DNA of 64,000 bases from Rhodosorus marinus CCMP1338 (lineage: Eukaryota; Plantae; Rhodophyta): contig JAMWBK010000010.1 of the NCBI GenBank assembly GCA_029953675.1, positions 1 through 64,000 on the forward strand, given 5' to 3'. Every line of letters starts with the position of its first letter. Within the stretch, counting starts at the first letter, position 1. Below, in pieces: positions 1 through 54,659 of this stretch. The translations under genes and the position numbers were made by a program. Under the pieces are notes generated by a model. The model was not told the DNA's origin. It worked only from the letters and a program-made list of their open reading frames with translations, and made no database searches.

Positions 1-480
1 GGTTACGTTAGTCTGGGGTTACGTTAGTCTGGGGTTACGTTAGTCTGGGGTTACGTTAGTCTGGGGTTACGTTAGTCTGGGGTTACGTTAGTCTGGGGTT
101 ACGTTAGTCTGGGGTTACGTTAGTCTGGGGTTACGTTAGTCTGGGGTTACGTTAGTCTGGGGTTACGTTAGTCTGGGGTTACGTTAGTCTGGGGTTACGT
201 TAGTTTGGGGTTACGTTAGTCTGGGGTTACGTTAGTCTGGGGTTACGTTAGTCTGGGGTTACGTTAGTCTGGGGTTACGTTAGTCTGGGGTTACGTTAGT
301 CTGGGGTTACGTTAGTCTGGGGTTACGTTAGTCTGGGGTTACGTTAGTCTGGGGTTACGTTAGTCTGGGGTTACGTTAGTCTGGGGTTACGGGTTACGTT
401 AGTCTGGGGTTACGGGGTTACGTTAGTCTGGGGGTTACGTTAGTCTGGGGTTACGTTGAGTCCTGGGAGTTACGTTAGTC
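1..480 (+). repeat. Telomere-like tandem repeat (GGGGTTACGTTAGTCT)n, G-rich on +
   Basis: Near-perfect 16-nt units from 1 to ~390 (one C>T variant near 205), degenerate 390-480. G4 run and strand asymmetry at the sequence terminus. Confidence 0.9.
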
Positions 481-840
481 TACCCCAGACTAACGTAACC
501 CCAGACTAACATAGCCCCAGACTAACGTAACACCAGACTGCATGGCCCCAGACTAACGCGCCCCAGACTAGCATGACCCCAGCGCGGCCTGACTGCTAAT
601 GACTTGGTGGCATAACCCCAGACTAACGTAACCCCAGACTAACGTAACCCCAGACTAACGTAACCCCAGACTAACGTAACCCCAGACTAACGTAACCCCA
701 GACTAACGTAACCCCAGACTAACGTAACCCCAGACTAACGTAACCCCAGACTAACGTAACCCCAGACTAACGTAACCCCAGACTAACGTAACCCCAGACT
801 AACGTAACCCCAGACTAACGTAACCCCAGACTAACGTAAC
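481..840 (-). repeat. Same telomere repeat in the opposite orientation, (CCCCAGACTAACGTAA)n; expected polarity for a left chromosome end
   Basis: Degenerate 510-612, perfect units ~613-840, directly abutting the 3' end of a family T element. Confidence 0.9.
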
Positions 841-1110
841 CGTGAGCTTTATTGGGCAGTCGCCTAATGCGACGTAACACTAAGCCGATTGCTATCTAGG
901 GAATCACTCACAACAACCCCGCTACCGGGGTCTCATGCTACGTTCAAAAGAAAAAACAGGAACCAGTGGGTTCTCCAACTGGTCCGCACGTAGAGCGCCA
1001 AGCGCAATCGCCGCGTTCCCCTGCCATAGGATCCTGTTTAACTGGGATCGTGCATCCCTCAGCTCCTCATCTCGATGCAACAAGTGTTTACAACTGTCCC
1101 GCAAAAAGTC
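841..1110 (-). mobile_element. Family T non-LTR retrotransposon, short 5'-truncated copy (C-terminus of ORF2 plus 3' UTR) inserted in telomere repeats
   Basis: Encodes DFLRDSCKHLLHR...FERSMRPR*, matching the end of ORF 48848-51040. 3' UTR ends ...CCCAATAAAGCTCACG|GGTTACGTTAG. Telomere repeats on both sides. Confidence 0.9.
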
Positions 1111-1133
1111 ACCCCAGACTAACGTAACCCCAG
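1111..1133 (-). repeat. Interstitial telomere seed (about 1.4 units)
   Basis: accccagactaacgtaaccccag, a perfect match to the terminal repeat, lying between two T fragments. Confidence 0.9.
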
Positions 1134-3295
1134 TGGCCTGTAGGCTCCGAGCTGCATCTGAAAGGCGGCCAAGGTGTGCTAGTTTCAGCGCTCGCTTGTG
1201 GCGCCCGAGATGTTTGCGTCGAACCGCTTCAGCTCCTTGCGGTGCGGTAGTACGCGACAGCATAGACGCCTTGTCCTCTAGAGCGCTCCAGACCGTAGAG
1301 AATTCTCCTTCAAGCACATGCGATACCTGAATGCCAACATCAAGTGCAGAGTGTCCGAGGACAAGGCCTGGAAGTCCGACAAGAAGCAGACTGGCGTTTG
1401 CTGGTGCGGTGCTGTCCATAGAGAGCTCTAATGCAGCACGGAAGAGGCAGCTCCATGTGTGAACCTGGGCGCGTGGCACAAATCGCCGTGTGGGAACCGG
1501 GCAGTGTGTAAGGCGCGTCCACTGCCTGCCTCCTTGCGTGACGTCGTCGACGAAGACGCTCCACCGCCTGATCCAGTCTTGGCGATCCGAGAAGAAAAGA
1601 GGCTCTTCGCGGCGTCGTTTGATTCCCCTACGTCTGCTCGGCATTATTGCGCTGGGTTTTCCTGGCTCTCCTGCGTGTCCATCGCGTGATGGTTGCCGTC
1701 AACGGCAACCTGTGTCCCAGTGGTATCCTGTGGAGTCTCCACGGCTGCCGGAGTCATCTCAGTATCCGGTCCGGTGCCATCGGCGGCCACTCGCGAGCGC
1801 TTCTGTTGAGGTGGCTCCGGAAGGTTGCAGAGGAGCTCCGCATGGGGATTGTCTTCGTGTGCTGCGTTCTCAGGTACTTGGGAAGTCGCACTGGTCTCAA
1901 CCGAGGCGTCAACTCTCCCACGGTCTGCCTGTACATCCCCTGGAAGGGACGAGGCTTCAGGGTCTGCGTTCGTGGCGGCTGCAGGCGCTGGGGGTTCCGC
2001 GCTCTCCCCGGGTACCGTTGGAGTACGTTGTGTGGCTTGTAGGGATCCGAGTCTGCTCTCCAGGTACTCGTGTATCGCTGCGAGTGTGTTGAACGAGAGT
2101 TGCCTTCTGCGGAGTCTCGCGCGGATCCGGATAGTCTGTTCAATCGCCCGTTTCAGGGTCTGAGCCCCGATATTCGCTGGGGCAATGAGCTGACGTTCAT
2201 TGTAGCCCAACAGGTTGTCTGTATCCAGTGCCTGGCCCGTGTAGAGAGTCACTTGCCGATCAGGGGTGTCTCTGGGTGAACGAACCGAAGATGCCCGTCC
2301 TGAAAACGCCCCGAGAGATGGCGCTTTGTAGAATCGGAATCGCGTCCGGATGGCAGAGTAAGCACGCATGGGAAGCGATGAAGTCCACGTGCGCCACATA
2401 AGAGCTCGGAATCCCCAAGGCTCTGCAAAGGACCGTGGTGAAATCCGATGGGGCTACCTCGTCCATCCGTGGCGGTCTTACATTCCTCAGGGTCGCCAGT
2501 ACCGGCTTGGTCTCAGGTCCCCAGGAGGACCCTCCCACAGTGGCGTGCAACTGTCGTAGCGCTGCCTGCTGGCTCTGTGGGCCCGGGCGCCCGGCTGGTC
2601 GGAGTTGAGCCTCTGATTCTCGAGCTGGAGTACTTTGGGCAGTCCTCTGAGCGTACGTTGGCCGTGTGCTGCTGATACCGGCAACCGGGAAGGCCGTGGC
2701 ATAGTCCAGTGGGGCAAGGACACCTGTCCCCTCCGCAAGTTGATTGATGATGGGTTCTGCCGCATGTTGATTGACCGCCGCCGTCCGCGGGTGCTGCTGC
2801 GGGGGTTGAGGCGGGGTCGTAGTGGCTCGTCCGTCTTGCCACATATGCGGTTTTGGCGAGCTCATTCAGACGTCCTGTCACTGATTGAAGTTCTTTTGAG
2901 CAGTTGATGCGGGAATAGAGGTTGAAGGCGGCCTGGTAGAAGTCGGCGATGTCCGACTGGCCGATTCCCAGGGCGGTATAGCAGTGGTCGTAGCTCTGCA
3001 GTTGGTGGAGAAAGGCGACAGCTGGGTCTGCTGTGGCCTGCTCCGCGGCACCCTGTTCTGCATTCCTCTCTGCCTCCTGTTCTGCTCCCCTATACTGGTG
3101 CTGTTGCTGCTGCTGCTGCTGCTGCTCTTGTAGCAGCTCTTTCGCCCTCTCCATTTCGCGGGTACCCGAGGTGTGTGGGCCCGCGATCACAAGAGGCTCG
3201 GGGTACGGCCCGCGTACCTCCTTCACAATCATACTTGTAACTTTTTATCACCTTTTTCCGTCGTTTTCCACAAACAAAGCCGTCCAAACCAGAGA
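1134..3295 (-). mobile_element. Family T element, 5' half (5' UTR, ORF1, start of ORF2), broken and capped by telomere repeats
   Basis: 1134-1700 is nearly identical to 51470-52058. The 5' end abuts degenerate telomere units at 3296-3327. Confidence 0.85.
1644..3232 (-). pseudogene. Family T ORF1 (polyQ/helical N-terminus, conserved NVRP domain, low-complexity C-terminus), split by two frameshifts
   Basis: Overlapping ORFs 2513-3232, 2260-2865 and 1644-2399. The RNVRPP...SDF...LG...VDF segment aligns by eye with the ORF1s of families A and C and with T2. Confidence 0.7.
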
Positions 3296-3327
3296 GTAAC
3301 CCCCAGACTCAAGTAACCCCAGACTAA
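3296..3327 (-). repeat. Degenerate interstitial telomere repeats at the 5' junction of the T element
   Basis: gtaacccccagactcaagtaaccccagactaa. Confidence 0.8.
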
Positions 3328-3336
3328 GTTGAAAGA

Positions 3337-6300
3337 GTGGTGGTGGTGGTTCTACTGGTTTTATTGGTTTTATTAGCAGAGCCTAAAGCGCTACGCAAAC
3401 CGTGAAAGGGATCTAAGAACTAGGTAGGGAAGCGTCCAAACCAGGCACCGATGGCGCGCCTCGGCAAGCATGCTCCTCGAATATCGCCACAGAGAGAGAC
3501 TTAAACGCCGCAAAAGTTCCAAGTATTCAACAGGATGCTAGGTGAAACATTTCCGCAACCACTCCAAACCCGCCTTCTCCACGTGACCAAAGCTTTCCAC
3601 AATGAAGGGCTGGAATCGCCGCGAAAAAAAGAGCCCTACGTTGTCAAGTAAGGGAGGCTCCCCCCTCCGTAAATACCGGATAGGAACGGCCACGCCTCCG
3701 GGAATACCCTTCGAATCACCTCCAAATCAAGCGTCCGCGAGACGCTGTTGAACGCGTTCCTAAGTCAACCACCAAAACACCACAGTCCGGCCTCCTGGCT
3801 CGCTCGAGCTCGATCGCATGAGTGATCAGCTCGCACCCCCCGGAAAATCCCACCCCTACCCGTCAAGGCGCCATAAAAGCGGTGCCACCTCCCGGCGAGC
3901 TTCCGTAGACTCTCGACCATGCCGATCGGCCGGAGACGCGGGTGTGCCGGCTCGTGGTCGGGTTTCGTTAGCAAGCAAAGTTGTGCCCGTCGCAGATGGT
4001 CCCAAGGGGCAGACGCACCCCCTGCACCCTGGAACACCGTATTCAGAATTTTCATCAGTGCGCTCTGGTCAGGCTTGCTCAAGGCCTGCAGTAATCCCAT
4101 TCGTAGCCCAGAGGGTCCAGGGCAGCGTCCACGCCGGGAGGCCCGGAGCAAATCCTCCAGATCAGATTCACGAAGCGTCAGGTCGATGCGGAACCTGGCC
4201 AACTCTGGAAGGTCTAAAAATGTCTCGAATTTAGGGAGCAAGTCCACGTCGGACGAGGGGAACAACGCCGACACAGTCTGGTCGAGGCTCTCGTCGTAGG
4301 GGGTAAAGGCACCTGGCCCTCCAAGACCCGTACCGCTCGGCTCAGGTCGCCAACCGCCATCAATTTCTGCACTCGAGTCGTCCTAAGCGAGGCTGTCCCA
4401 GCACGAGTCCTCCGGCCGGATGCCTCGGATGACGCCAAGTAGCTCTGCTGCAACACCTCAAATTCCCCCTTCAGGACTTTGGCCAGCCGTTCTCGGACGC
4501 GCCATCTGCGCTCCGATGTGTGAGTGGGTGCCAGAATCGGGCGCGGCATGACCCCCAAAAATTCTCACATAGCAACGTCCCGTTGATTACGCGCCAGACT
4601 CTCGAAAATAAAATCCAGGATTGTCCCAGCTATGGAGAGCTCTCCTAGAGGGGAGGAGGGGCGGAATCCTTCCTCGGAGGGGTAGGGAGCCTCCTTCCAA
4701 ATAAATCCATCGCCGGAGCCAACTCCGCAGGCGCGTGCGCCAGATGCCCCAGTCTCCGCCTTCCTTGAGGACATAAGACTGCAGGTCCATTGACTGCGAC
4801 CTCGCAGCCGTGCCCGGGGAGCTAATCGTGCTTCTCCCCCTTACACCCGGGGGAGTCGGTCCTGGCGCGCTTGCCTCTTCACCTCGCCAAACTGGTCAAC
4901 CGGCCACTCCGCGAGGCTCGCGGGATGGCTCTCCCGGGATTCAACAAAGTAATAGGGGGGTTCTCGACCGACATGCCCTCCGACTCCCCTTCCTCGCCAC
5001 TCGCACTGGAAGTGGTGCTTGGAGCGAAGCCCTCTAATAATCCCAAACGCCGTAGCTCTTCCTTGTGACTTGAAGTCAGCACAAGGTGGTCAAAAAAGGT
5101 AGAGGAGGCTGCGCGCAGATGGCGTGGACTCCACGCAAACGCTCCAAAAGTATCCGCTCCATGTGGTGAATGCGAAACCAATGGATGGCTGCAGCTTTCA
5201 CACTGGTCTCGCGCTCAGATAGCCCTGCTGTTTCTCCGGGAGAGAGGAAAGTGCCGGAAAAACGGTCGAACCCGAAATGCAATACAACCTGGGGTTGAAA
5301 ACGCAACCAGCGGGCGCTCTCAGGCCACTGCTCGGTACGCTTCTCAAGCAGGGCCTGCAGGTACGTGGCCGGGGTTGCATAGACCACAAAGAGGACATCG
5401 CGACCCTCATAATTGCGAAGATGAAGTCTTCGCGGCTACACCCCAAAGACTCCGCAAAAGTATCCCGAAAACCTCGCATGGACGGGACCTGGCCCAGTGT
5501 AGTCTGGGGCCGGACGTTGCGCACCCAGAGGAATTGCAAAATAGTCGCCGCAGGTCCGCCCTGCTGCTGGCGAGAGGGCAAAAATCTTAGCATAGTCGCC
5601 GTCCGTGCGGCCGTGGTACCCTTTAGCGAAACTGAGACGTAAGACGGGGCCCGTTTGGGACCACCGCGTGCCCCCGCTCGAGCTGTCGCCCACCCGAGGG
5701 CTGGCCCAGGACGGGAAATTCCGCTTCAGCTGAGGGAACATTCGGCTAAGCATGCTGCTAGAATATCGCCACAGGGCGGCGATATTACTCAAACGGCGTA
5801 AAAGCGCCAAGTACTCAGTAGGATGCTCAGCGAAACATTTCCGCAACCCCTCGAAGCACGATTTATCCACATGACCAAAGCTTTCCACAATGAAAGGCTG
5901 AACCGGTGGGAGCGACCCTCGGCGTAGGGCAGACTGGCCATGCTCTCAGCATACCGTCGTTCCTTCACTCGTCGAAGAGCCGAAGCGGCTGCCCCTCGGC
6001 GGTGGGCGGCAGCCGTGAGGTGGGCGCTCGCCACAGGGCATGTAATCGCGAGGTCAACATATGCTGGGCGTTAGGCGGCAGGGTCTGAGACAAGAAGATC
6101 TGCGATACAGCGGCCGGCGCCGTGTCCGAGACCGATCCAGGTAGTTCCGATTCCTCGTCAACCGTATGCCCTACCCGAGTTAAACATTCGCTTAGGATGT
6201 ACTTGAGGCGAGTGTGGCGCCTCGTGCGGAGACCTCGCAACAGTCCGCATGAACCCAAGAAGTGGTAGCCACAAGCGTCAATCCGGCTCTCACATCTCTG

Positions 6301-7147
6301 ACAGATCGACGGCCGATTAGAGTGCACGGGGCTTGTGGCAAACCTAAGTAGACCCGTGCGGCGTGGAAAGGAACTAAAAACTAGGTAGGGAAGCGTCCAA
6401 ACCCAGGCGCCGATGGCGCGCCTCGACAAGCATGATGCTCGAATATCGCCACAGAGAGACACTTAAACGCCGCAAAAGTCCCAAGTATTCAACAGGATGC
6501 CCAGTGAAACATTTCCGCAACCACTCCAAACCCGACTTCTCCACGTGACCAAAGCTTTCCACAATGGAAGGCTGGAACCGGTGGGAGCGACCCTCAGCGC
6601 GAGGCAGACTGGCCATACTCTCAGCATACCGTCGTTCCTTCACTCGGCGAAGGGCCGAAGCAGCTGCTCCACGGCGGCGGGCGGCAGCCGTGAGATGAGC
6701 GTTTGCCACAGGGCATGTAATCGCGAGGTCAACATATGCTGAGCGTCTGGCGGCAGCATCGGAGACGAGGAGATCTGCGATACAGCGGGGCGGTGCCCTA
6801 TTCGAGACCGATCTGGGTAGTTCCGATTCCACCTCAACCGTATGCCCTACCCGAGTCAAACATTCGCTGAGAATGTACTTGAAGCGAGTGTGACGCCTCG
6901 TACGAAGACCTCTCAACAGTCCGCATGAACCTAAGAAATGGTAACCACAAGCATCGATCCGACTCTCACATCCCTGACAGAAAGACGGTCGATTAGAGTG
7001 CCACGGAGCTTGTGGCAAATCCAGATAGATCCGTGCAGCAGAGCGGATCCTAAAGGCATCGAGACGGTGACCCAGTGACGAAGTCAGTGTGGTTAGCCAC
7101 AAGTGCGACAGGTTGCCTCCCATGCCTCGGAGGTGAGCGGCGGTGGT
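3337..7147 (-). mobile_element. Stack of family A non-LTR fragments (3' end with tail, RT/ORF1 segment, two RLE segments)
   Basis: Tail AATAAAACC at 3345-3375. RT-region peptides (LRPIGMVESLRKLAGR). ORF1 peptide (WVRNVRPQTT). RLE ORF 6374-7123 (CQGC...H...C, RTRRH, ADLLVSD, YVDL, KERRY, VESFG). Confidence 0.85.
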
Positions 7148-7157
7148 AGGCTGTACT

Positions 7158-7211
7158 GGACTTTACTAGCATAGCCTGAAGCGCTACGCAACGCGTGAAG
7201 ATGAACTAATA
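7158..7211 (-). mobile_element. 54-bp family A mini-insertion (3' UTR plus tail only)
   Basis: Flanked by the 10-bp direct repeat aggctgtact (7148-7157, 7212-7221). Confidence 0.75.
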
Positions 7212-7214
7212 AGG

Positions 7215-8330
7215 CTGTACTAGTCTCCCCGAAACGGTTCAACCCCGTCTTCCTGACTGGCGAGCTGTATTTGACCGCTCTCGAGGCTCCGCCCCGGGGA
7301 TTCGTCCTGCGCCTGAACCTGTTCTAGGGGAGATTGACCCAGTGGTTGCCGCAGAAGAAGAAGTTCCAGTTGATCCTCCTGATGATTCCCAGCGCGCTGG
7401 GAGCCGAGCTCAAGCACGCACGGATGCGCTGCAAAATATCCTTTCTTGGGAATTACACCGTGTTGCATATGGCCGACTCCTGGCGCAGATGGTCTCATCT
7501 TCTCGCGCTCGCGCCCGCCTACGTAGTCTTGGAGGGGTTATTAGCTCTCAGTGGCTCATGACCGTACCAGCCTTTCCGCCACTCACACTGTCGGATTTCG
7601 AAGTGCGTACTTCACTGCGCTTATACCTCGGCTTACATCAGCCCCCTTGGCCGTACGAGATGGGTTCGTCGTGCCCTCTCTGCTCTCAGACCGAAGACAA
7701 CGCAGATTTTGGCGCCCACCTGCTCGCTAGTTGCCCGGCGGTGAAAGGTGCTCGAACCCGCCGCCATACACGGATCTTGAACCTGTTATACCGGGAACTT
7801 CGGCCTATAGTCCGGCAAGCCGGTCTGGAAATCGAACGTGAGAAACCTTTACCCGTCGCGGACTTTCAAAATGATGAACGCCGTGTAGCCGACCTGGTGA
7901 TCACCTGTGACGACAGCCGCCGTACCACATACGTTGATCTTGCTGTTCCTAACCCTCAAGCTAGTCGTTATCTCCCGGCTGCGGGGGAGCGCCGTGGATC
8001 TGCCGCCGCCAGCATGAGACGCCGCAAAGAGATCAAATACGCGGGGGCTTTGTCTTCCCCTGGTGTTCGTGCTTCGGCACTAGCACATCGCTTGGTACCC
8101 CTGATCATTGAGTGCTTTGGGTTCATGGACTCTGTTGGTTCTCGCTGGCTTCGGGAGTTGTTCCGCGAACGCCCTGACCGTCTTCAATCGTTGTTTACCC
8201 GCTTAAGTTTCCTGCTGTGGCGCATGAATGCCGCTTTGATGTTGGAGGCGCGAGTACTTCGCCGCGCTTAGTCTTTTTTTCCCCTCGGGGTTTTTTTTTT
8301 TTCAGCCTCCGATTAAACCATTCGTTCGTT
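7215..8330 (+). mobile_element. Family C non-LTR retrotransposon, 5'-truncated (CCHC, RLE and 3' UTR)
   Basis: ORF 7342-8271: CPLC...HLLASC, RTRRH, RVADL..YVDL..KEIKY..LIIECFG. Colinear with 27824-29230. Ends ccgattaaaccattcgttcg. Confidence 0.9.
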
Positions 8331-8462
8331 CTCGATGCGTACTTTTGTTAGATATTCCTTCTTTGATTGTTCAATCAATTCGGTGCTTTGTTTGTTCAGA
8401 CGAATGATAGATTTGTTTTTATTTTTCCCCCTGTTTGTCTACCCATGGGATTGCTTTGTGCA

Positions 8463-9650
8463 TCAAAGCAGGCGCTGGACAATAGGACAATTGATGATTA
8501 TTCCTACCGATCCATACTCATCTCCATTCGGACCCGTGATGAAACCATCCAAGACAAGTCCAAGGATCTGGAACTCCTCCAAGACCCTCGTTCTGATTCC
8601 CAACTTGATTGCCTTCTTAGTCCACTCTCCAAGGTTCATATCCCACAGAGGGCTGTAGTCGGTAGCGATGGTTGGGATTCCACCGAGCACATTGAGTGGT
8701 CCACCTTCTCCACGTAGAGCAGATTCGATTCCTTGTCTCTGTGGGTGATCGAAGTTAGAGCTTCTGGGTAGCTGTGCGTTGCTTGGCCCGTTTATGGTAA
8801 CGAAGATTCTCTCGACAGCTGAGAACGCGCTATCATCGCCACCCACGACAACAGCATCTAGACCTGGAGCGAAGGTGGAAGCCTCCAGTGCGGCTACGGT
8901 CATGTCGTTTGCATCGGTGCTGATGTAGAAAACCGGTCTAGCGAAGGAAAATCCAGAGGCCAAGTTCAACGTCACAGTCTGCTCTTCAGGGCAAATTGCG
9001 ATAACCGTATCATGAATATATTTGTAGGCCTTTTTCGCCTGTCTCCCTGAGATTCCGTTGCAGTAGTCATTCAAGAAGTTTACCCCATCCGCAACAATTG
9101 GAGCGTTGTACAGGGAGCGGTCGGTATTGACAAGCCGGATCAGCGGCGTGTAGTTTTTGTCTCCAATCGCTCCAGGCCTCGCCCTTTTTGGTGGAAACGG
9201 ATTAGGCTCATCACCAGGGACAACAGAACGTGCGGGCCGGAAGTCCACCTTTCCAGTCCTGTTTCGAATCTTGAACCCATCCAAGTATACATCGTCCACC
9301 GCCCTTCCGTGTGCATAAGACAGTTTAGGAGCGACGTTGAGGCCAAGTGCTTCACCATTTCCCCGATCAGTAGTATCAGTGAGAATGTAGTAGTGCTTGG
9401 AACCATCTTCATAGTATCCTTCATATAGAGGGAGAGTGACGGTACCAGCATCGAGGTCTACAGTTCCAGACCTCAGCAATTGATGAGGTCCAATCAGCTC
9501 CTTTTGAACAGAAGACGGTGGTGGCCCAAAGTAGGTCAGCGGAACATCGGCTCCAATTGACGGTGGAGCGGGCTGCACGTCATCATCAGCTTTGGCAAAA
9601 TTCAGGCTTGCAGCGAATAGCAGTACGACCAACGATACGAGTTTCGCCAT
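8463..9650 (-). CDS. Intronless secreted protein (~395 aa) of unknown function with an internal two-fold repeat
   Basis: Signal peptide MAKLVSLVVLLFAASLNFAKA, uninterrupted ORF, C-terminal GGPLNVLGGIPT..DYSPLW motif. TATAAG ~105 nt upstream (9755-9760). Confidence 0.85.
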   Translation of the reverse strand: MAKLVSLVVLLFAASLNFAKADDDVQPAPPSIGADVPLTYFGPPPSSVQKELIGPHQLLRSGTVDLDAGTVTLPLYEGYYEDGSKHYYILTDTTDRGNGEALGLNVAPKLSYAHGRAVDDVYLDGFKIRNRTGKVDFRPARSVVPGDEPNPFPPKRARPGAIGDKNYTPLIRLVNTDRSLYNAPIVADGVNFLNDYCNGISGRQAKKAYKYIHDTVIAICPEEQTVTLNLASGFSFARPVFYISTDANDMTVAALEASTFAPGLDAVVVGGDDSAFSAVERIFVTINGPSNAQLPRSSNFDHPQRQGIESALRGEGGPLNVLGGIPTIATDYSPLWDMNLGEWTKKAIKLGIRTRVLEEFQILGLVLDGFITGPNGDEYGSVGIIINCPIVQRLL

Positions 9651-10799
9651 GGTATCGGATTCAATTGGTTCCAGGGCAAACAGGCTTCGAGCTCCCACCT
9701 TATGATCTGGGGTGAGCTAGCAGTTTTCCAGCAGATGGGTGCTGCCTGCCTCTACTTATAGAGTTTGATGCGCCCCAAGGCTTGTGCATTATCCCAGTGT
9801 AGGTGGCAGGGCACGCTATCTTTCGCGACGTCGAGGAGAAAATCGCTTGTACGTCAACTACCAGAAGAATTATTGTTTGAAAGAGACACCGGAACAAGCT
9901 GTTTCATTCTGTTTCAACGAGGTCGTATCTCCCCCTCAGGAGTGAGATCTTGGTCGAGAGCTAAAACCGCTGTATGTGAATCTCAAGTAGAAACCGACCT
10001 AGTTTCTTTCCGCAAATTCTTGTACGTTTTCACGTTATTGCGGGCAGCTTTGGGAAACAAAACAAATCTAATTTTTATTTGAACGTTTTCGCCGGAGGAA
10101 ACTGGATCATTTTTGAAGAGTCGAATACCAAGACCCTGGTGTGCCGGCGAGGATTGAGACCTCTGGACCGGGGGTTTCGGTATGTTTAGAGCTTACTAAC
10201 AGTGTTGTTAGTGATACGCAGCGGTAGGTAGCTGCCGAAAAAAGGCTATGGGATTTCAGTCGAATCAAAGCAGCGGAAAAATGGATACGTCTCGGTTGTA
10301 GCTCCAACCTCACCCATACCCATGCGGGATGAAGTACAGAGGCAGACCATACCCTTGAGAAGCTAGTTGAGTCTTCTGCACCAATGGACCAAAGCAACTA
10401 TGCTAAAAGACCGTTCCTTTCCACCGCAACAACCCGCCGGAACTGCTTGAGGTAGTGGAGGTTTGCTCACCAAATTTAGTCTGACTGACTTAATTTTGAT
10501 GCCTTTTATTAACTTTTGATTGAATGATTGACTGAATTTGATGGCAGTCGTTCGTCCACGTCAGAATCACTTGACTGGTTGGGACCTTTGCTGTGTTTTT
10601 TGCACGGCTCACGGTGGGAGGGAGGGGCTTCTGGGGTTGATTGGTTTACAGACGTTCTCCGCTAACAGACGAATGAAGACAGTGTTGTACAGAGCGGAAG
10701 GGGCTAAACCATGGACTGATGATTCCGCTAACGCCGCTATTCGGGATCCTCATGTTTCTTCCATTTTCGAAGCGCATCAGTTGAATAGCGCTCACTAAA

Positions 10800-11110
10800 T
10801 AAATGCATTTGTTTAATCGGAGGCTGAAAGAAAAGAAGCCCGAGGGAAAAAAAGACTAAGCGTGGAGAAGGTCGCGCTCCCACATCAAAGCAGCGTTCAT
10901 ACGCGACAGCAAGAAACTTAAACGGGTAAACAGCGAGGACAGACGGTCAGGGTTTCGCGGAACAATTCCCGAAGCCAACGAGAACCAACGGAATCCATAA
11001 ACCTAAAGCACTCAATGACCCGAGGTACCAGGCGATGAGCTAGAGCCGAAGCACGAATAACTGGGTGAGTCAAGGCCCCCGCATATTTCAACTATTTGCG
11101 ACGCTCATAT
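10800..11110 (-). mobile_element. Diverged family C (C2) 3' remnant
   Basis: Degenerate match to the C 3' region (gtttaatcggaggctgaaa...gactaagcg...catcaaagcagcgttcat). Confidence 0.75.
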
Positions 11111-11470
11111 TGGCAGCGGCAAATCCGCGGCACTCTCCCGCTAAATAGAGCTCGATGTTCGTATTATTCCATAGAACGCACCAATTTCAAATTGTGAAGC
11201 ATCTAGGCAAACACCCATATTCTTTTCCTCCTTTTTTGTGTGACCTATTTCTCCGGAGTTTTCTACGCCCAGAAAAGCAATCTGTCAAGACTTCATGTTC
11301 ATAGGAGGGGATCACTGCTCAGTTAGACGCATGGAAGTCCACTAGAGCAATATATCTCCCTTGCCTTGAAGAGGGCACCAACCCGATAGTCGAGATCCTG
11401 ACCGCTCTTGCAGCTGGTGCATCTACCGACCCTGTAGGTTCGGAGAATATGATCCAGCACTGCTATATGA

Positions 11471-11619
11471 TGACCGTCTTCAATCGTTGTTTACCCGCTT
11501 AAGTTTCCTGCTGTGGCGCATGAATGCCGCATTGATGTTGGAGGCGCGAGTACTTCGCCGCGCTTAGTCTTTTTTTCCCCTCGGGGTTTTTTTTCAGCCT
11601 CCGATAAAACCATTCGTTC
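11471..11619 (+). mobile_element. Short 5'-truncated family C copy with 9-bp TSD
   Basis: gctatatga at 11462-11470 and 11620-11628 flanks the C ORF end plus UTR. Confidence 0.85.
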
Positions 11620-11799
11620 GCTATATGAGATTATGAGATCTGGGCAGAGCCCTCCTAAGTTCTGCGATTCTCATTGGGAGGCTCGGCCTGACTCAAAAGT
11701 CAGGGTGAGTGACGAGTACAGCGTAAGTGGGCTAAACGAGACCCGCGAGGTCTAAATCCTGGCCAGCTTCAGTGCTTGAATTATGATTTCTCGGTCTAG

Positions 11800-11890
11800 T
11801 ACACGGCGATATTCTACAGGCATACTCGCCGAAGCGCGGCACAGCCGCCTGGGCTTTTCTCCAGTTCCTAGTTTCCTTTTTCGGTCGGGC
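11800..11890 (+). mobile_element. Old degenerate family A 3' remnant
   Basis: cggcgatattctacaggcatactcgccgaagcgcggcacagccgcctggg resembles the A ORF2 C-terminus. Confidence 0.5.
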
Positions 11891-12182
11891 GTTGTCTTCA
11901 CGACGCTGTACATTGGAAAAAATCAAGGTAAACCCAGAAAACGGAGAGAGATGTTTATGGGGTGAAACCCTTCTGTTTCCTCGCAAAAACCTTTCGTTTC
12001 AATTATTTCCAAAACCTGTCTGGAACTGCTCAATCGGATGCAAGTTTCTCATTGAATGAAAAATCTCCTTAGTGGAAAAGTCAGTCAAAAAAATGCGTGG
12101 TCCAATCTGGCTGCTAGGATTGTATGACTGACTATGTTAGTCTTCGAAGGTTGGGAGGAGAAATGAATTCGGCTCGGGGAAC

Positions 12183-12197
12183 GAACGAATGGTTTAA
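12183..12197 (-). mobile_element. 15-nt family C micro-insertion
   Basis: gaacgaatggtttaa (C 3' terminus) between two copies of tcggggaac (12174-12182, 12198-12206). Confidence 0.7.
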
Positions 12198-12876
12198 TCG
12201 GGGAACAGGGCCTGCTGTGGGATATTTCACAAAAGTTTTCCTAAAAGTCAGGCAATACAAAAGGGTCTGGTTTTCGTGGGTTTCAGTGGGATAGCTGGCA
12301 AATAAGGGCTAATGGGCGATTCCAGCTCTTTGGATGAATATGTGGAGAGATGGCCGGTTAATTTTTTAATTTTTATAGCTAAACCGGTTTCTTAGCGGGG
12401 AATACGAAAATGCGAGTGTTTTCCAGAGTTCAGGAGGGGAGGGAAAGTGGGGAAGGCTTTTGTTTCTTGCTTGCCTCGAAAATAGTCTGTTTTCGAGGTT
12501 CCTGAATTTCAATATTGCCACTTTGGTTCTGGTTGGAGTGCGGGAAGGCCCCAACACGAGAGGGGAGCTGGGGCGATTGGTTAGCTGTCCGTTGAGAGGA
12601 TAGAGAATAAGTTCTTCCGAGGAGGTGAAACAGAGGGCAAGGGTTCCGGAGCATCGGTAAAAGAGTTGCTTCAGCTTGACTCGGCCGTGGGAGAATTCCA
12701 GAGTTTGTAGATGATTAAAGTTTTTGCAGGAAGTGGACTGATCGCTTTTCTCACAAGAGCATTGCAAGGGGGTCGACGGAGAGTGCGAAAATAGAAGCGG
12801 ATGCTGCCGCCATTTGTTCTAGCTGCCCTGGTGGTAGCTTTTACAATAACAAGTCCACTTGGAAGACATCTAGTCA

Positions 12877-15800
12877 GCTACAAGACAGAGCTGCAGCGGG
12901 TGGGGATTTTGGAGGGCTCTGCTTCCAGCACTACTTCCAGCGAGAGTGGTGAGGCAGGGGAGCAGACTGAGGGCATGGCGGTGGAGGACGCCCAGGTTAC
13001 TTTGCTGAAGCCCGCGGGATCCGTTCCGCGAGCCTCGCGGAGTGGGAGGCTCACGACTTTGGTGCGGATAGGAGGTAAGAGAGCGAGGACCGACTCCCCC
13101 CGGGTCTAAGGGGGAGAAGCACGATTAGCGCTCCAGGCACGGCTGCGAGGTCGCAGCCTATGGATCTACAGTCTTATGTCCTGAAGGAGGGCGGAGACTG
13201 GGGCATTTGGCGTACGCGTTTTCGGAGTTGGCTCCGGCGGTGGATTTCTTTGGAAGGAGGCTCGCTTCCCCTCCGTGGGGGCATTCCCCCAGTCGTCCTT
13301 CCTCGTGGAGACCTTCTGGTAGCAACCATTCTCGATTTCATCTTCACGAGCCTGGCTCGCAACATTCGGGACACAGTCATTTGGGTTTTTCTGGGGGTCA
13401 TGCCGCGCCTGATTCTGGCCCCCATTCACACATCGGAGCGCAGATGGCGAGTACGAGACCGACTGGCCCTGTTCTTGAAGGGAGACTTCGAAGTACTACA
13501 GCGCAGCTATTTGGCGTCGTCAGCACCATCCGCCCGTCGGACTCGGCATGGCACAGTGTCGCCCGTGCCAGCTCGAGTACAGAAATTGGTAGCAGTGGGC
13601 GATTTAAGTCGAGCGGCGCGGGTTTTGGAGGGCCAGGCGCCTGTCCTCCCCTACGATGATAGTCTCGCCCAGACGGTGTCGTCTTTGTTCCCTGAGTCCG
13701 ACGTGGATTTGTCCCCTGAATTCGAGGTATTCTTGGACCGTCCGGAGTTGGCCAGGTTTCGCATCGATCTGACCCTCAGTGAGTCTGACCTGGAGGATTT
13801 GCTTCGTACCTCGCGTCGGGGACGCTGTCCTGGACCCTCCGGACTAAGAACAGAGCTATTGCAGGCCCTGAGCCAGCCTGGCCAGAGCGCGCTTCTGAGG
13901 ATCCTTAACAAGTTGTTCCAGGGCGTATCGGGTGCGTCCGCGCCATGGGAACATCTCCGGCAGGCACAGCTTTGCTTGCTCACGAAACCTGACCACCAGC
14001 CGGCCCACCCGCGTCTCCGGCCGATCGGGATGGTGGAGAGCCTACGGAAGTTAGCCGGGAGGTGGCTATGCCAGCGCCTTCGCCAGCGCGTCACAGCTTT
14101 TATGGCGCCCTTGCAAGTAGGGGTGGAATTTTCTGGGGGTTGCGAACTGATCACCCATGGGATCGAGCTAGAACGCGCCAGTAGGCCGGAGTGGGGAGTC
14201 TTGGTGGTTGATTTCCGGAACGCATTCAACAGCGTGTCGCGGACGCATGCGCTAGAGGTGCTCCGACGTGTGTTTCCGGAGGCGTGGCCGTTTCTATCGG
14301 GTATTTACGGAGGGGAGAGCCTCCCTACTTGACAACGGAGGGCACTGTTTTTCAAGCACATACTGGCGTCCAACAAGGCGACCCTTGCGGACCTCTTCTT
14401 CATGCCTGCGCCCTACAGCTCGTACTTTTACGTCTTTCGACTGAGGTCTCGGATCTTCGAATCTGCGCGTACCACGATGACGTAACATTGCTGGGCACCC
14501 CTGACACCCTGGCTAGGGGACTGACCGCGATCGAAGCGATTGCACGTCGCGTCGGTTTGACTGTGGAAACAGAGAAATGTCGCTTTCTCCCCGCGAGGGA
14601 CGTGTCGCTGAACTCTCTGCCACCCACTCTGCGACTAATCAGCGAACGTGAAGGGTTCGAACACCACGGCGTCGGATTGGGGACTGACAACTTTGTCCAA
14701 GCATCCTGCGAGCGAGTTTTGGCACGGCACAAGCAACTCACCGACGCCATTGAGCACCTACCCGACAGCATGCTGCAATCGGCCTGCTTGCTTTCCCGCT
14801 TTTGTGCCGGTCCCAGACTCAACTACTGGTTGCGCAGCCTGCCTCCAGCTTGGGGCTCGTGGATCGCGGCTAAAGCCGACGAAATGACCCTGCAACACTG
14901 GGGAACACTCTTGGATGAGCCCCTCGATCTTGAAGCTGCTCCCGACAGGGACTTTATTCGTGCACAGATCGCTCTACCGTTGCGATTAGGGGGATTCGGC
15001 GTCGCAGACCGTGGGCTGGTATGCTCGCCAGCGGCGGTTGCCTCCTGGGCTACCGCGCTGCGAACGTTGGTGACCTTCCGGATGCGAAGTGCCTGCCTCT
15101 TGGCTTGAGCTTTGACCAACGAGGATCCAGTGACCCTGCAGCCCCCGCTTTTGACAATTTATGATGGTCTTCAACACGCGTTCAGGAGGTGCAACGCCGT
15201 GCCGGACGCAAATCGGTCCCGCTTTCGTTCCTGGAGGGAGCTGTTATGGGGACGAGCTGAAGCGATTGAGGATTGTCCCCTCGACCGAGTTCTTGCCGAT
15301 GACGGAGAGGCTAGCCCCGGGTCCCCTGTTGCAGACTACCCGGGTTTGAGCCGATTGTGGAGCTCCCGCACTGATGTGATTCAACATAGCCTCACCTGGG
15401 GCCAACACAGTGCCGCTCACACAGTCATGCTCAATTCTCCTCTCACGCCGCCTACCACTGGCGCTCGTCTCCGCGGCATGGGAGGCCACCTCTCGCACTT
15501 GTGGTTAACCACTCTACCGTCGTCATTGAGTCATCGTCTCGATGCTTTCCAGTTCCGTTCTGCCGCACGGATCTATCTCGGTTTGCCACAGGCTCCGTGG
15601 CACTCTAATCGGCCGTCTTTCTGTCAGGGATGTGAGAGCCGGATTGACGCTTGTGGCTACCACTTCCTGGGTTCCTGCGGACTGTTGCGAGGTCTCCGTA
15701 CGAGGCGTCACACTCGCCTCAAGTACATCCTCAGCGAATCTTTGACTCGGCTAGGGCATACGGTTGAGGTTGAGTCGGAACTGCCCAGATCCATCTCGGA

Positions 15801-16335
15801 CTCTGCACCGCCCCGTTGTATAGCCGATCTCCTCGTCTCCGACGCTGCTGCCAGACGCTCAACATATGTGGACCTTGCGATTATCTGCCCCGTGGCCAGC
15901 CCCCACCTCACCGCAGCCGCCCGCCGCCGGGGGGCCGCGGCTTCAGCCCTTCGAAGAGTTAAGGAACGACGGTATGCTGAGAGCATGGCCAGTCTGCCTT
16001 GCGCTGAGGGTCGCTCTCACCGGTTCCAGCCATTCATTGTGGAAAGCTTTGGTCACGTCGATAAGTCGGGTTTAGAGTGGTTGCGGAAATGTTTTGCTGA
16101 GCATCCTACTGAATATTTGGCGCTCTTGAGGCGTTTAAGTGTCTCCCTTTGGCGATATTCCAGCGACATGCTTTCCGAGGCGCGCCATCAGCGCCTGGGG
16201 TTGCATGCTTCCCTCCCTAGTTATTAGTTCATCTTCACGCCTTGCGTAGCGCTTCAGGCTATGTTAGTAAAGTCCAGTCCAGTCCAGTAAAGTCCAGTAA
16301 AGTCCAGTCCAGTCCAGTAGAGTCCAGTAAAGCCC
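12877..16335 (+). mobile_element. Family A (A1 subfamily) element, truncated within ORF1, with the full ORF2 span
   Basis: ORF1 end, then ORF2 13160-16227, 3' UTR, tail of AGTAAAGTCC/AGTCC units. Candidate TSD agtca at 12872-12876 and 16336-16340. Confidence 0.9.
13160..16227 (+). pseudogene. Family A ORF2: RT plus CCHC plus restriction-like endonuclease (one frameshift ~14320, in-frame TGA 15106-15108)
   Basis: VDFRNAFNSVSR, GVQQGDPCGP, AYHDD, FCAGPRLNYWLR, LPLRLGGFG, CQGC..H..C, ADLLVSD, YVDL, FIVESFG; CRE-clade-like motif set. Confidence 0.88.
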
Positions 16336-16619
16336 AGTCAAGGTCAACTCATACAGCGTTCCGATTCGTGTACAACTGTTGATATAATATTCTATAATAA
16401 ATACAAAATTAAATCGTCAGTCAAAATAACTGCGTATACCAATCATGTTCACGATACACTTCACTGGGGATTGAAGTCTCAGTCATTTTCTGTGGTTAGT
16501 TGGGGTCTCAGCAAATTTTTACCCCAGACTAATGATGGGTTTTGATCTGGGACGGAGGGCCTTTTTTAGTTAAAGACTTGTGACGTCTGCGATTCTACGA
16601 ATTCGATATTTTCAGACCA

Positions 16620-17260
16620 ACTTCATACCGCACTGTCGACGCGGTATGGGAGGTCACCTATCTCACCTGTGGTTAACCACTCTGCCCTCGTCACCGGACC
16701 AACGTCTGGACGCATTCCAGTTTCCTGACTACCGCAAGGATCTACTAGCCGGGTTTGCCACAGGCCCGTTGGCACTCTAGTCGTCCTTCCTTATGCCAAG
16801 CTTCGAGCGTCGTATTGACGGTTGTAGATACCATTCCTGGGCTCGTGTGGACTATTGAGAGGTCATCGTACGAAACGTCACACCCGTCTGAAGTACACCC
16901 TGAGCGAGTATTTGACTAAGGTTGGTCGTACGGTTGCGGTTGAATCTCAACTGCCCCGATCAGCCCTCGGCCACCACGCCCCCCCGTTGCATCGCAGATC
17001 TCCTCGTATCGGACCCCACCGCCAGAAGCTCAGCTTATGTGGACCTCGCTGTCACCTGCCCTGTGTCAAGTACCTATCTACCCTCAGCCGTCCTTCCCCG
17101 GGGGGCAGCAGCTTCTGTACTTCGCGAACTGAAGGAACGACGGTATGCTGAGAGCATGGCCAGTCTCCCCTGCGCAGAGGGCGGTTCTCACAGGTTCCAG
17201 CCTTTCCTTGTGGAAGGCTTTGGGCATCTGGAAAAATCCGGCTTGGAGTGGCTGCGGAGC
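16620..17260 (+). mobile_element. Degenerate family A RLE fragment joined to copia gag
   Basis: ORF 16922-17362 begins with RLE motifs (CIADLLVSD, YVDL, FLVEGFG) and then runs into unrelated sequence. Confidence 0.75.
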
Positions 17261-17269
17261 GGACGGGCC

Positions 17270-19395
17270 AGCACTGGACAGTGCCTTCGCCTCTTCCAGA
17301 GAGGCTGCTCCGGAAGAGGTGTGGGCTGCTCCGGAAGAGGTGTGGGCGACACTACGGGCTAGGTATGAGCCCTCATCACACAAGGCGGTTGAAAAGATAT
17401 GGAGCAGAGTGTACAGGCGGAAACTACACTCGGCTGAAGCCCCTCGGTCCCTGGTTAACTGGTTAGAAAACCAGTTTGCGGAGATACGAGAGATTTCGGG
17501 TGTGCCCACCCATAGAGGATGAGAAAAGACGCGTTCTCATCAAGATACTGGAGGAACGGCGTGAGTACTCAGAGTTCCTGTACCAAGCATGTAAGGATCC
17601 CGATTCGAATTGGATCAGCCTGTGCAAAGACTTCGAAGAATTACACAGGCTGCGAGGATCTAATGTGGATAGGCCTGACAGGTCTACAAAGCCAAAGCCC
17701 ATCGTTAAGAACGAGCCCGAAGAGCATCGTGTTTCGAGGATGACAGCGAAAAAGAAGAAGAAGAACCCCAAACGAATCGTGTGTTTCGGGTGTAAGAACT
17801 TCGGCCACATACGAGCCAACTGCCCTGAGCAGGACAAGGAGGAAAACAGGCCGGAAACGCGAAGATTTCACGCAGGAATGACTGCGGTCAGAGCTCCAGC
17901 GAGGTTCGTGCTGGAATCTGGAGTAACGGACCACATATGCACCTCGGAGATTGCATTCTCGGGCCCCACAAGGATGGTTGACGCTGACGTCACATTCGGG
18001 GACTTGACAACGAAGACCCTCGGCAAGATGGGTACGGTCGAGCTGAAGACGCGAAAAGGAGATACGTTGTCGCTGAAGGACACTATCTACCTTCCAGGCG
18101 GCTCATTGAATGTAGTCAGTCTTAGTAGATTAATGGAAAACGGTTTCTCCATTAGATCTTTAGATGGAAAAACAGTAGTCATAGAAAAGGACGATATCCA
18201 AGTTTTTAAAGCTACCGCCAAGTCTGGTCTTCTTTATACTGATTTGAAAATGAACCGGGACAGCAGCCCAAAAACAGCAGGTCTGTCGTTCCGCAGCAAC
18301 GGAAACACGGATGCCATGGGTTGGCATAGGAGGCTAGGACATCCAGGCGTTGGAGCAATGAAACAACTGCAGAAGGATGGAATTATCAGGGTGAGCGAAA
18401 AGATACCCAACAAGCTCGAGTGTCCCAGTTGTGAAAAGGCAAAAATGATCGCGATGAGTGGAAGGGAAATCACTGAGGAAGGCGGAGACACACGGCGAGT
18501 GTCTACACAGTGATATTGCCGACCCTTTTCCCACGGGAAAAGGGGGAATTAAGTACGTTGGGGTGTTCGTGGACGAAGCGACGGGGTTGCTGAGGCGTAC
18601 GTCCTGGAGCATAGAAGTTTAATCGACGAGGCGCTGCGAGAACACCTGATGAAAATGCGTACCCGATATGGGACTAGTACAAAGAGACTCAAGAGTGATA
18701 ATGCACTTGAGTACAAAAGCATCAAGCCACTGCTGCGCGACTTGGGCATCATCTGGGACCCAAGTGCACCGTACACTCCCTCGAGCAATGGGATCGCTGA
18801 GAGGATGGTGAGAACGGTCTCCGAAAGATTACGAGCCACTATGATCGGTAGCGGGCTACCAGACGATATATGGCCGGAGGCGTTGCCGGTGGTGGTTCAA
18901 AACATTAACCGGACGCCGCGGAAATTTCTAGGCGGAAAGAGTCCACAAGAATCAGTCACCAAGGAGAAACTCAAGATGGAACAGGTGTACCCATTCGGAA
19001 GCGAAACAACTTACAAGGTAACTGGCCCGGGAAAATTGGGGAAGCTGCAAGATAGATCTTCGACGGGAATACTCATGACGATACGAGATTCCCACGTGGC
19101 GAGGATCTATGACCCGTCGACTGATAAATTTGTGGAGGCACGAAGCTGGCGCGTGTCGGAGGACGTTTTCCCTGGCACAAAAATGAACGGGTCTAAGTCA
19201 ACGACGAACGAATGGTGTAATCGGAGGCTGAAACGGCGCAGCCCGACGGGAGGGAGATCTCAATCAATTTGATGCGCAGAGGAGATTCCATGTACGACGT
19301 ACCTGATCCGGAATCTTGGAACGTGGCCATCAACTGGCCCTATGCCAAGGAGTGGAAACGAGCAGCTGCAGAGGAGCTTGGCTCACTGCGTTCCC
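17270..19395 (+). mobile_element. Ty1/copia LTR retrotransposon fragment (gag, protease, integrase; truncated before RT)
   Basis: Zinc knuckle CFGCKNFGHIRANC, degenerate protease LESGVTDH (catalytic D>E), pre-integrase WHRRLGH, integrase RLKSDNALEY and SNGIAERMVRT, WKRAAAEEL. Confidence 0.88.
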
Positions 19396-26687: not shown

Positions 26688-27597
26688 CTCGTCCGTAGCG
26701 CTCCAACGACGTCAGCTCACTGGTTCCCAACTCCCCGTTTGCTCCGCGTCCAGCTTTGAAAAGACCCCAAAGCATTGCCAAACCCGAGCAACTTGCCTTC
26801 TAGCCACACCAGCGCTCCCTGTTGCCCACAAATCCATACATGCAGTATTTATAGCTAACTCAGTCTCCTCTCAAACACGTAACAAACGGTTGGTGAAGAT
26901 ATCAGCGCAAAGCAGCCATAATCATCGTTTCGATAACAGCGAAACCTTCCCTTTCCTCCCCCCGGGTGGATTTCTGAAAAGGGGTAACGAAGATATGAAT
27001 CCCTTTCAACCTCCAGTAGATTTCACTTGTTTTCCTGAGACCGATTCACTTAGTCACCCGTTTCGCCGATGGAGGGAGGTTGTTTTTCGATCTCCGAATG
27101 AACACATGCATTCAATGGAGGGACCGAACAAGCTCATAAAGTCTTGTTGCCACGCATCTCCCGTGGAGGAAGGGTTGAACTATCGTCAGGCATTTCCCCG
27201 CAACTCTATTCAGCGACCCAACACGAGAAACGCGAGAAGGGGGGGAGAGGAGTAAACATACAACATTCAAGGGGGTGGACCAGATTTCTCTCAATCTAAT
27301 TTTCTAGAATAGGCTATAAAAAAACTAACACTGAACCGGAGTGGGGGGGCATATGGCAAGAAATCTACACTCCGCGGTTTGCGAGCTACTCCAATCTTGA
27401 TTTTTCAAAGTTTCCTTTAGTACTTGTTTTTCCTTTTGGTTGTCGAAGACCCTCGGAATTGGAGGTTTTTAGTGACTACACAAAGCGTCAACGACACATT
27501 CAGTCTTACTCAAGTTGGATAAGAAAGAGTCAGTTCAGCGAGCTTCTCAGCCTGGAAATCGAGAGTCTTGGTACACAAAATTTTGCATCGAACATTT

Positions 27598-27755
27598 CTG
27601 ATGGAAAGCTTTTCAGATAGAAAACTTTGCGGATGGAAAGTTGTTCGGATAGAAAGTTGTTCGGATAGAAAGTTTTTCGGATAGAAAGTTTTTCGGATAG
27701 AAAGTTTTTCGGATAGAAAGTTTCTCAGATAGAAGATTTCATATGGGAAGTTCCA
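27598..27755. repeat. 16-bp minisatellite (GGATAGAAAGTTTTTC)n
   Basis: About 9-10 units, near-perfect in the centre and degenerate at the edges. Confidence 0.85.
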
Positions 27756-27823
27756 GGGAGAAGGATAAACAGCCAATGGACCAAAAATACAGCTGACCTC
27801 CGACGGCTGCCGAGTGTATACCC

Positions 27824-32519: not shown

Positions 32520-32529
32520 GTGTATACCC

Positions 32530-32547
32530 AGGGTTACGTTAGTCTGG
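32530..32547 (+). repeat. Interstitial telomere seed, G-rich on + (inverted relative to the chromosome end)
   Basis: gggttacgttagtctgg, a 17-nt perfect match. Confidence 0.8.
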
Positions 32548-32586
32548 CGCCAGCCCCGGGGCCGGCAGGCCGCGATACCCAATCAT

Positions 32587-34950: not shown

Positions 34951-34974
34951 GTCACCGCGGCTTCGTTTCCAGAA

Positions 34975-52058: not shown

Positions 52059-53134
52059 GGTAACCCAGTATTCTGCTCCTTTCGATTTGGACAGCTTTCC
52101 GCAGACGTCCGTGTGAATCGTCTCTCCAGGGCGACTCGCGTGTGCCAGTGTTCCTGCCCGGATTCCTCGTCTTAGTTTTGCTACCGTACATGTTTCACAG
52201 TCCGGGGTTGACGATGCCGGTTGGATCTGTTTCACTTTCTGCCAGTCCGTGTGACCTAGCTTTCGGTGTAGTTTGCTTAGGTCACGCATTGAGTTTAGTT
52301 GCTGACTTTTCGTTGTCCACGACGCCAGTATCTACGTGCTGTTTATCAGCTTTGCGCTTGCAACCACTGCCCCTCCTTTTTCGTAGAATTTACAACCTTT
52401 CCTATCGAAATTGACATTGTATCCTTTCTTCACAATGGCAGGCACAGGCACAGATAGGTAGTTTCCCTCGAGGCCAGGTAGGTATAAATCGTCCTCGATC
52501 GTTATTGGTTGTCGCTTATCGCCAACTGTCGTTGCGATGACCACTGTTCCTTTTTCATTTCCGCTGATCGTTCGTTGGTCTGGGAGAGTTACAGTATTGA
52601 TCTTAGATTCCTTGATTGTCGCGAACAAAATTCGTTGACCGAGCATGTGGGACGTTGCTCCGGAGTCGATGACTATGTCGTTTGGATTTGCGCTGAAGCC
52701 TAGTGCAAATAGGGTTTCTTTGTCCGGTTCCTTGTTGCGGCGTTGGAAATTCTTGCTCCGGCACTCCTTTTGGAAATGTCCATATCGGTTGCACTTCTGG
52801 TATTTGATGTGTGCCTTGCATTGTGCTGTTCTGTGGTTGTGCCTTCCACATTTTTCGCGCTTTCGACTTTTGCTTTTGAACTGCATGCGCATGATCGCGT
52901 GCTCGTTGGGTTTTGATGTTTGCGTTGGCCCTTGAACACCTCCCAGGCGGGCTCTCATGGTTTCCCAGTCGATTTTGGTCCTTCGAAATGTTCGTCAGGC
53001 CTTCGATGGTTGCATCGAGGACGCTTTCATCCTTCAGGATCAGGCATATGTGACCCAAACGGTGTATGGCTTTGTACTCTGTTGTATCGAGTTTAAATAC
53101 TTTAGAGTAGTATTCTTCGAGCCATGTGAGTAGC

Positions 53135-54625: not shown

Positions 54626-54659
54626 GGGGTTACGTTACCCCAGACTAACGTAACCCCAG
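54626..54659. repeat. Interstitial inverted telomere junction
   Basis: ggggttacgtta-ccccagac-taacgtaaccccag. Confidence 0.8.

Follow-up and report, generated by a model that had tools for sequence, protein, structure and literature searches.

Long telomere units are classically a feature of budding yeasts, in which the repeat measures 16 nt in Candida glabrata, 23 nt in Candida albicans, and 25 nt in Kluyveromyces lactis. The known red algae also depart from TTAGGG and TTTAGGG, and their terminal repeats have been found from long-read assemblies. Cyanidioschyzon and Cyanidiococcus carry AATGGGGGG (AATG6), Cyanidium carries AATGGGGGGG (AATG7), and the Galdieria unit is given as the 10-mer T2AG3T3A in a supplementary note and as the 11-mer TTAGGGTTTAA in an oligonucleotide table (PMC9812998). 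A broad survey of 2013 described rhodophyte telomeres as "recalcitrant to standard analysis", with telomerase assays that were negative or ambiguous with the primers then available. A literature search found no published telomere motif for the class Stylonematophyceae.

Rhodosorus marinus, a red alga of that class, is represented here by a 64-kb stretch of DNA from strain CCMP1338 (the window, analysed as a whole). It opens with tandem copies of a 16-nt unit, GGGGTTACGTTAGTCT, whose G-rich strand has G or T at 12 of its 16 positions and includes a GGGG block. We consider it likely that this unit is the native telomere repeat of R. marinus, most probably made by telomerase, and that the true tract is the inner of two opposed arms. 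Like the budding-yeast repeats, the unit exceeds 10 nt, is perfectly reiterated, has a G/T-rich strand with a G cluster, and implies a long telomerase RNA template; it differs from them in belonging to another supergroup (Archaeplastida, Rhodophyta) and in its unrelated sequence. The known red-algal units, in contrast, measure 9-11 nt and have only GGG(G)TTA-like fragments in common with it. Presumably there is also a partial resemblance to the fission-yeast-type GGTTAC and to the Yarrowia repeat GGGTTAGTCA. A fungal origin of the DNA, suggested by the likeness of TTAGTC to the Yarrowia repeat, was dismissed when its source became clear.

Base 1 of the window is base 1 of contig JAMWBK010000010.1 (1,690,454 bp; assembly GCA_029953675.1, 17 contigs), which also encodes a protein 100% identical to the ORF at 8463-9698 (minus strand). 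A locus record (L002; record positions 1-19650 of its source contig) is identical to window positions 1-19650 read as the reverse complement, so that the window starts at contig base 1 and the array is terminal on the contig. What is observed is thus the end of a contig, which does not in itself prove the end of a chromosome molecule. For this assembly, NextDenovo 2.5.0 was run on ONT GridION reads, followed by three rounds of Pilon polishing, and the genome paper reports telomeres on 12 contigs and does not give the sequence of their unit. The 16-nt unit is printed neither in the text of that paper nor in those of its supplements that were searched, and the paper is also the only publication returned for "Rhodosorus" together with "telomer". 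Literature searches with the unit, in all rotations and on both strands, returned primer coincidences with no telomere context, and metagenome scans with two units (a 32-mer) and with a 20-mer gave 0 matches. The case for a telomere therefore starts from one contig end and from the authors' unspecified statement about 12 contigs.

With up to two mismatches allowed, the unit matches 48 times in the window, where dinucleotide-preserving shuffles lead one to expect 0.01. Tandem Repeats Finder divides the terminal array into two blocks of period 16, one at 1-481 (29.9 copies, G-rich on the plus strand) and one at 482-841 (22.2 copies, C-rich on the plus strand, 83% matches), and lists no telomere-like or canonical-motif array elsewhere in the window. 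On the plus strand, G-rich units therefore give way to C-rich units at 481/482, and the G-rich strand runs 5′ to 3′ toward the contig end in 482-841 and away from it in 1-481. What the preliminary description took for one long homogeneous array at 1-840 is accordingly a pair of opposed arrays, degenerate near the flip (Table 1). Its count of 6/8 self-complementary positions for the core TTACGTTA is arithmetically correct; the hairpin propensity of either single strand does not differ from that of shuffles.

Table 1. Telomere-repeat tracts, retroelements, and Dicer-like gene segments in the R. marinus window (RT, reverse transcriptase; RLE, restriction-like endonuclease).
Feature	Positions	Strand	Description
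Outer arm	1-481	+	G-strand units GGGGTTACGTTAGTCT 5′ to 3′ on +; wrong polarity for a left chromosome end
Degenerate C-strand zone by the flip	482-619	-	138 nt; doubtful sequence accuracy
Inner perfect tract	620-841	-	14 perfect units; C-strand on +, G-strand toward contig end
Short B-like insert	842-1110	-	5′-truncated 3′ end of an RT/RLE retroelement
Exact tract	1111-1133	-	23 nt, ACCCCAGACTAACGTAACCCCAG on + (C-strand); directly adjoins the broken 3′ side of X
Element X	1134-3295	-	B-family copy without any sequence 3′ of family position 51472
Decayed units	3296-3330	-	About 2.2 units, C-strand on +, between X 5′ end and C-family 3′ tail
C-family 3′ end	3331-3618	-	A-rich 10-nt-repeat tail
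Family C reference	12877-16342	+	RT and C-terminal endonuclease region, frameshifted; (AGTAAAGTCC)n tail 16266-16342
Family A	about 27823-32529	-	RT 28155-30461; CCHC and restriction-like endonuclease motifs C-terminal; 5′ side adjoins the unit at 32530
Single unit	32530-32547	+	AGGGTTACGTTAGTCTGG, 17/18 match, G-strand on +, upstream of + oriented X2
Element X2, B-family copy	32548-34975	+	Homology detectable 32821-34974
Family B reference	48768-53132	-	RT/RLE ORF 48848-51040; N-terminal region to about 51954
Mini head-to-head junction	54626-54660	.	GGGGTTACGTTA (12 nt, G-strand), then directly CCCCAGACTAACGTAACCCCAG (23 nt, C-strand)
Dicer dimerisation domain	61288-61923	-	Part of Dicer-like gene
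RNase IIIa	60194-60679	-	Part of Dicer-like gene
RNase IIIb	59140-59562 and 58699-59100	-	Part of Dicer-like gene

The two arms differ in composition. The outer arm holds 23 perfect units, one unit with a single-nucleotide difference (191-206), and indel variants at 367-481, and an exact palindrome is ruled out because the arms differ in length and in variants. The degenerate zone of the inner arm contains a 30-nt non-telomeric insert (about 577-611), and its substitutions concentrate in TTACGT, the core of the unit and the location of its single CpG. Such TTACGT variants could be methylation-linked Nanopore base-calling errors rather than real variants. Perfect units are proximal here and degenerate ones distal, the opposite order to the usual telomere gradient, and the zone at the flip may simply be poor consensus.

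These features bear on whether the outer arm exists in the genome. We infer that its 481 nt are probably a fold-back (template-then-complement) Nanopore read artefact at the end of a NextDenovo contig, because the arm is about one telomere length long, reaches no unique DNA, and has its errors gathered around the axis and in the part of the unit that contains the CpG, and because short-read polishing cannot fix a terminal repeat. A simple single-molecule fold-back read is not a full explanation, since the arms are not mirror copies and no Nanopore adapter aligns above chance at the 481/482 flip. For users of the assembly, the first 481 bases of the contig (perhaps the first 619) are not to be trusted. 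The genuine tract at the left end would then be the inner arm, comprising at least 620-841 and perhaps reaching out to 481/482.

A real head-to-head arrangement is unlikely. It would be an inverted telomere palindrome, formed when two telomeres or sister chromatids fused or when the G-overhang folded back and primed through its ACGT core, and the unit would still be the telomere repeat. The non-mirrored arms and the axis without an adapter speak for it, and an assembler would be expected to halt shortly past the axis of a true palindrome. The human 2q13 fusion, fusions of critically short telomeres, and fold-back chimeric long reads all pass, as here, from G-strand to C-strand repeats on one strand with degeneracy at the switch. 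However, a 2q13-type fusion has both arms running into unique DNA, whereas at 481/482 one side is a contig end with no second subtelomere, the G-strand arm stopping with the contig after 481 nt. The noisy-read ONT assembly, with terminal repeats beyond the reach of Illumina polishing, also counts against a real palindrome, as does degeneracy centred on the axis, which a strand switch would give. Furthermore, a palindromic end would be prone to form dicentrics.

A miniature junction of the same G-to-C polarity is fixed 54.6 kb inside the contig, where it separates the repeat-rich 54 kb from a lower-GC inner region, and it hints that flips can be real in this genome. It resembles what a fusion between two very short telomeres, or a fold-back, would leave; compared with known head-to-head junctions, its tracts are only 12 and 23 nt long. 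Its left flank (54431-54616) is similar to 12610-12800. One interior copy, at 32530, is also inverted relative to the inner arm, which speaks for a real palindrome, but this is more simply due to the plus orientation of X2. It is similarly improbable that the flips are biology in a wider sense, with ends carrying a 16-nt telomerase repeat being recurrently remodelled by head-to-head fusion or fold-back, breakage, and healing, while an endonuclease-bearing retrotransposon family homes to the C-strand. Under such a reading, the terminal palindrome and the junction at 54.6 kb would be two stages of one process.

Four features point to a telomerase-made repeat: the periodicity is perfect, the G/T-rich strand includes a GGGG block, the perfect tract is correctly oriented for a telomere, and the repeat caps a broken end. 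The last of these is seen at element X. Positions 1133-1710 of X are 95% identical to B-family positions 51472-52065, and the homology ends exactly where the telomere unit starts. The coding region of B crosses position 51472 (residues 66-357 of protein P0001 match 51954-51070 by tblastn), and X2 is colinear with B across the break point of X (34227-34340 matches 51542-51429). Since both B and X2 continue past 51472 and X does not, X is truncated on its 3′ side. Target-primed reverse transcription gives 5′ truncations and not 3′ truncations, so this end is better explained by a terminal break that was healed by de novo repeat addition. At X, 23 nt of exact repeat directly follow the broken, non-telomeric family position 51472.

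De novo addition at a break also counts against the alternative of a subtelomeric or interstitial satellite at which the contig ends by chance, the true telomere being another sequence lost from the assembly. This is very unlikely. It gains something from the fact that one end of one contig is seen, from a unit that fits no canonical TxAyGz motif, and from the occurrence of internal copies. Those copies, however, are relics of 18-35 nt at element junctions rather than arrays, and a satellite would not account for the strand asymmetry, the GGGG block, or the right inward polarity of the perfect tract. In addition, the authors scored telomeres at most contig ends, and the window has no array of a canonical motif that could take this role.

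The perfect tract adjoins subtelomeric DNA at 841/842. There, positions 842-1098 are the last approximately 257 nt of a B-like element, 79% identical to 48768-49024. The junction between the C-strand tract and the 3′ terminus of this short insert reads ...ACGTAACC|GTGAGC, and beyond the insert the repeat resumes with ACCCCAGACTAACGTAACCCCAG, so that the insert lies between ...ACGTAACC and ACCCCAG.... Its flanks are in telomere phase with 0-3 nt duplicated, and units in phase on both sides imply that the tract is older than the insertion.

This phase relationship bears on a further possibility, namely that the array is a retrotransposon product, with the B-family reverse transcriptase reiterating a 3′-terminal motif and chromosome ends kept by retrotransposition. 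The array does adjoin a B-like 3′ end, GTAACC is common to the unit and to both B 3′ junctions, the sister family C ends in tandem 10-nt repeats, and the subtelomere is nearly all retroelements. Nevertheless, we give this origin the least credence of those considered. The tract predates the short insertion, and at 1111-1133 the exact repeat lies at an internal break in X to which no B 3′ end is joined. Element tails are heterogeneous and no longer than about 80 nt, in contrast to the 14 and 23 perfect units in the two arms of the array, and the internal copy of B carries just 6-7 nt of the unit at its 3′ junction. The likely telomere reading retains much of the preliminary description, which had proposed an unusual long-unit telomere: the contig end, the polarity of the inner arm, the G/T-rich strand with GGGG, the capping of a 3′-truncated retroelement, and the authors' 12 telomeric contigs agree with it, while the single array, the polarity of the outer 481 nt, and the reuse of interior copies as seeds do not.

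Between 842 and about 54.6 kb, retroelements are piled one upon another; some 60% of this part is blastn-similar to three reference copies, with many direct and inverted repeats at 97-99% identity. Each of the families A, B, and C encodes a reverse transcriptase, and the best database relative, used as a tblastn query, aligns to all three. RVT_1 is found in A (3.4e-12) and B (1.3e-07) and is the only Pfam match in the elements, which show no AP endonuclease. The solved structures nearest to the reverse transcriptases are R2 retrotransposon proteins (E 1.8e-10), and the CCHC/RRH segment aligns to residues 944-983 of the R2 structure 9nl2. Homology between A and B extends from end to end at 29% identity and includes PD..D..K-like endonuclease motifs, the catalytic residues having been read by eye. 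By these sequence criteria, the families are assigned to R2-like non-LTR retrotransposons with a CCHC knuckle and a predicted restriction-like endonuclease. The reverse transcriptase has four homologues among 5.8 billion proteins, the best 35% identical and none from the R. marinus genome, which points to a poorly sampled branch of the R2-like group. The closest relative (L001; 35% identity, 1155 aa) is encoded with an upstream ORF of 389 aa on a metagenome contig of 4676 bp (ENA ERZ1740070, NODE_10134), and no telomere-like units are visible at either end of that contig.

The families differ in their ends. Family C was considered as telomere-specific and rejected, as five of the six 3′ junctions examined are non-telomeric, and family A was rejected because its 3′ ends are non-telomeric. 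The tails of family C consist of 10-nt repeats, either AGTAAAGTCC or AATAAAACCA variants, with no poly(A) (16266-16342, 53855-53888, and 3331-3365). Just past the 3′ end of A lies a second 16-nt tandem repeat, TTTCGGATAGAAAGTT (8.8 copies, 27595-27734), which is unrelated to the telomere unit. The A 3′ UTR (27823-28397) contains tandem duplications of 90 nt and 203 nt, each present twice, and fragments of this UTR alone occur at 10811-11141, 11471-11620, and 55504-56098, the last within the low-repeat region; they may be SINE-like riders on the A machinery.

Family B is the one associated with the telomere units. X2 is colinear over 32821-34974 with X (2571 to 1264) and with B (52053 to 50801). 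At 841/842 and 1110/1111, on either side of the short insert, and at 3295/3296 and 32547/32548, the G-rich strand of the telomere units coincides with the B-family sense strand. In this small sample, three of the four B-family copies touch telomere units, always with the G-rich strand on the sense strand. The 3′ junction of the fourth, internal copy (48768) is preceded by GGTAACC, and the hexamer GTAACC is also found at the telomeric junction at 841. Members of the family may therefore enter the telomere tract in a fixed orientation, with the sense strand continuing into the G-strand. The B endonuclease would nick the C-strand at or near GTAAC^C, a site suggested by four copies, and then prime on the nick. 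Such nick-and-prime integration in telomeric duplex is consistent with the endonuclease of the family.

Several described telomere-targeted non-LTR retrotransposons behave in a similar way. Bombyx TRAS1/SART1, Magnaporthe MoTeR1/2, and Giardia GilM/GilT lie in a fixed orientation between short telomere tracts and form subtelomeres from 5′-truncated copies, as B appears to do. The restriction-like endonuclease of B is of the kind found in the MoTeR and Gil elements, unlike the AP-type endonuclease of TRAS/SART. The B sense strand leads into the G-strand in the direction of the chromosome end, which is the opposite of end-primed addition of the HeT-A/TART type. Despite this similar behaviour, B is too distant and too thinly sampled to be grouped with any of these elements, with four copies available and one of them outside the telomere tract.

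The preliminary description listed interior copies of the unit at 1111, 3296, 32530, and 54626, and all four are present. It took them for reused seeds; they are instead remnants of earlier telomere tracts, which telomere-associated retrotransposons split or buried or which healing left behind. On the proximal side of X, the decayed units at 3296-3330 adjoin the 5′ end of the element and also the C-family tail, which joins the relic at 3330/3331. A possible fifth decayed relic, TACCCCAGACTAAT, is marginally above chance and lies at 16519-16533, 180 nt past a C-family tail.

Taken in order along the contig, these observations can be accommodated in a model of the chromosome end. Telomerase would copy an RNA template slightly longer than one 16-nt unit; a search of the 64-kb window against Rfam returned no matches and so no telomerase RNA, as expected for a sample of this size. 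The subtelomere from 842 to about 54.6 kb would have been built by repeated insertion of R2-like retrotransposons. The tract at 1111-1133 would have been added de novo at the break inside X, and those at 3296-3330 and 32530-32547 would have been left at B-family 5′ junctions, while 54626-54660 may be a tiny head-to-head relic that borders the unique region. Successive insertion and healing would push older tracts inward, where they decay to 18-35 nt.

GC content falls past 54.7 kb, and A-type 3′ UTR fragments extend to about 56.1 kb, followed by gene-bearing DNA. A Dicer-like gene with several exons occupies 58699-62480 on the minus strand (Table 1), its best solved relative being Arabidopsis DCL1. 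No database protein is identical to its joined exons, so that the deposited genome may lack an annotation of the gene or model it wrongly. Closer to the end, a DUF7482 gene (8463-9650, minus strand) lies amid retroelements 8 kb from the end, and no other gene is called within the first 19.6 kb. Its relatives, at 54-65% identity, are an MMETSP transcript, proteins from Chloroflexota and cyanobacterial MAGs, and proteins of the red algae Gracilaria and Agarophyton, which suggests a gene of bacterial affinity that is common to red algae.

A 16-nt telomere unit in R. marinus, if true, would explain why red-algal telomerase assays have failed, and would supply a probe or primer for TRAP, TRF, and FISH. 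It would also provide a template string with which to search for a red-algal telomerase RNA, for example the C-strand permutation within CCCCAGACTAACGTAACCCCAGAC. The unit would rank among the longest telomere units outside fungi, and the B-family elements would add a new case, phylogenetically distant, in which an R2-like endonuclease directs integration to telomeres.
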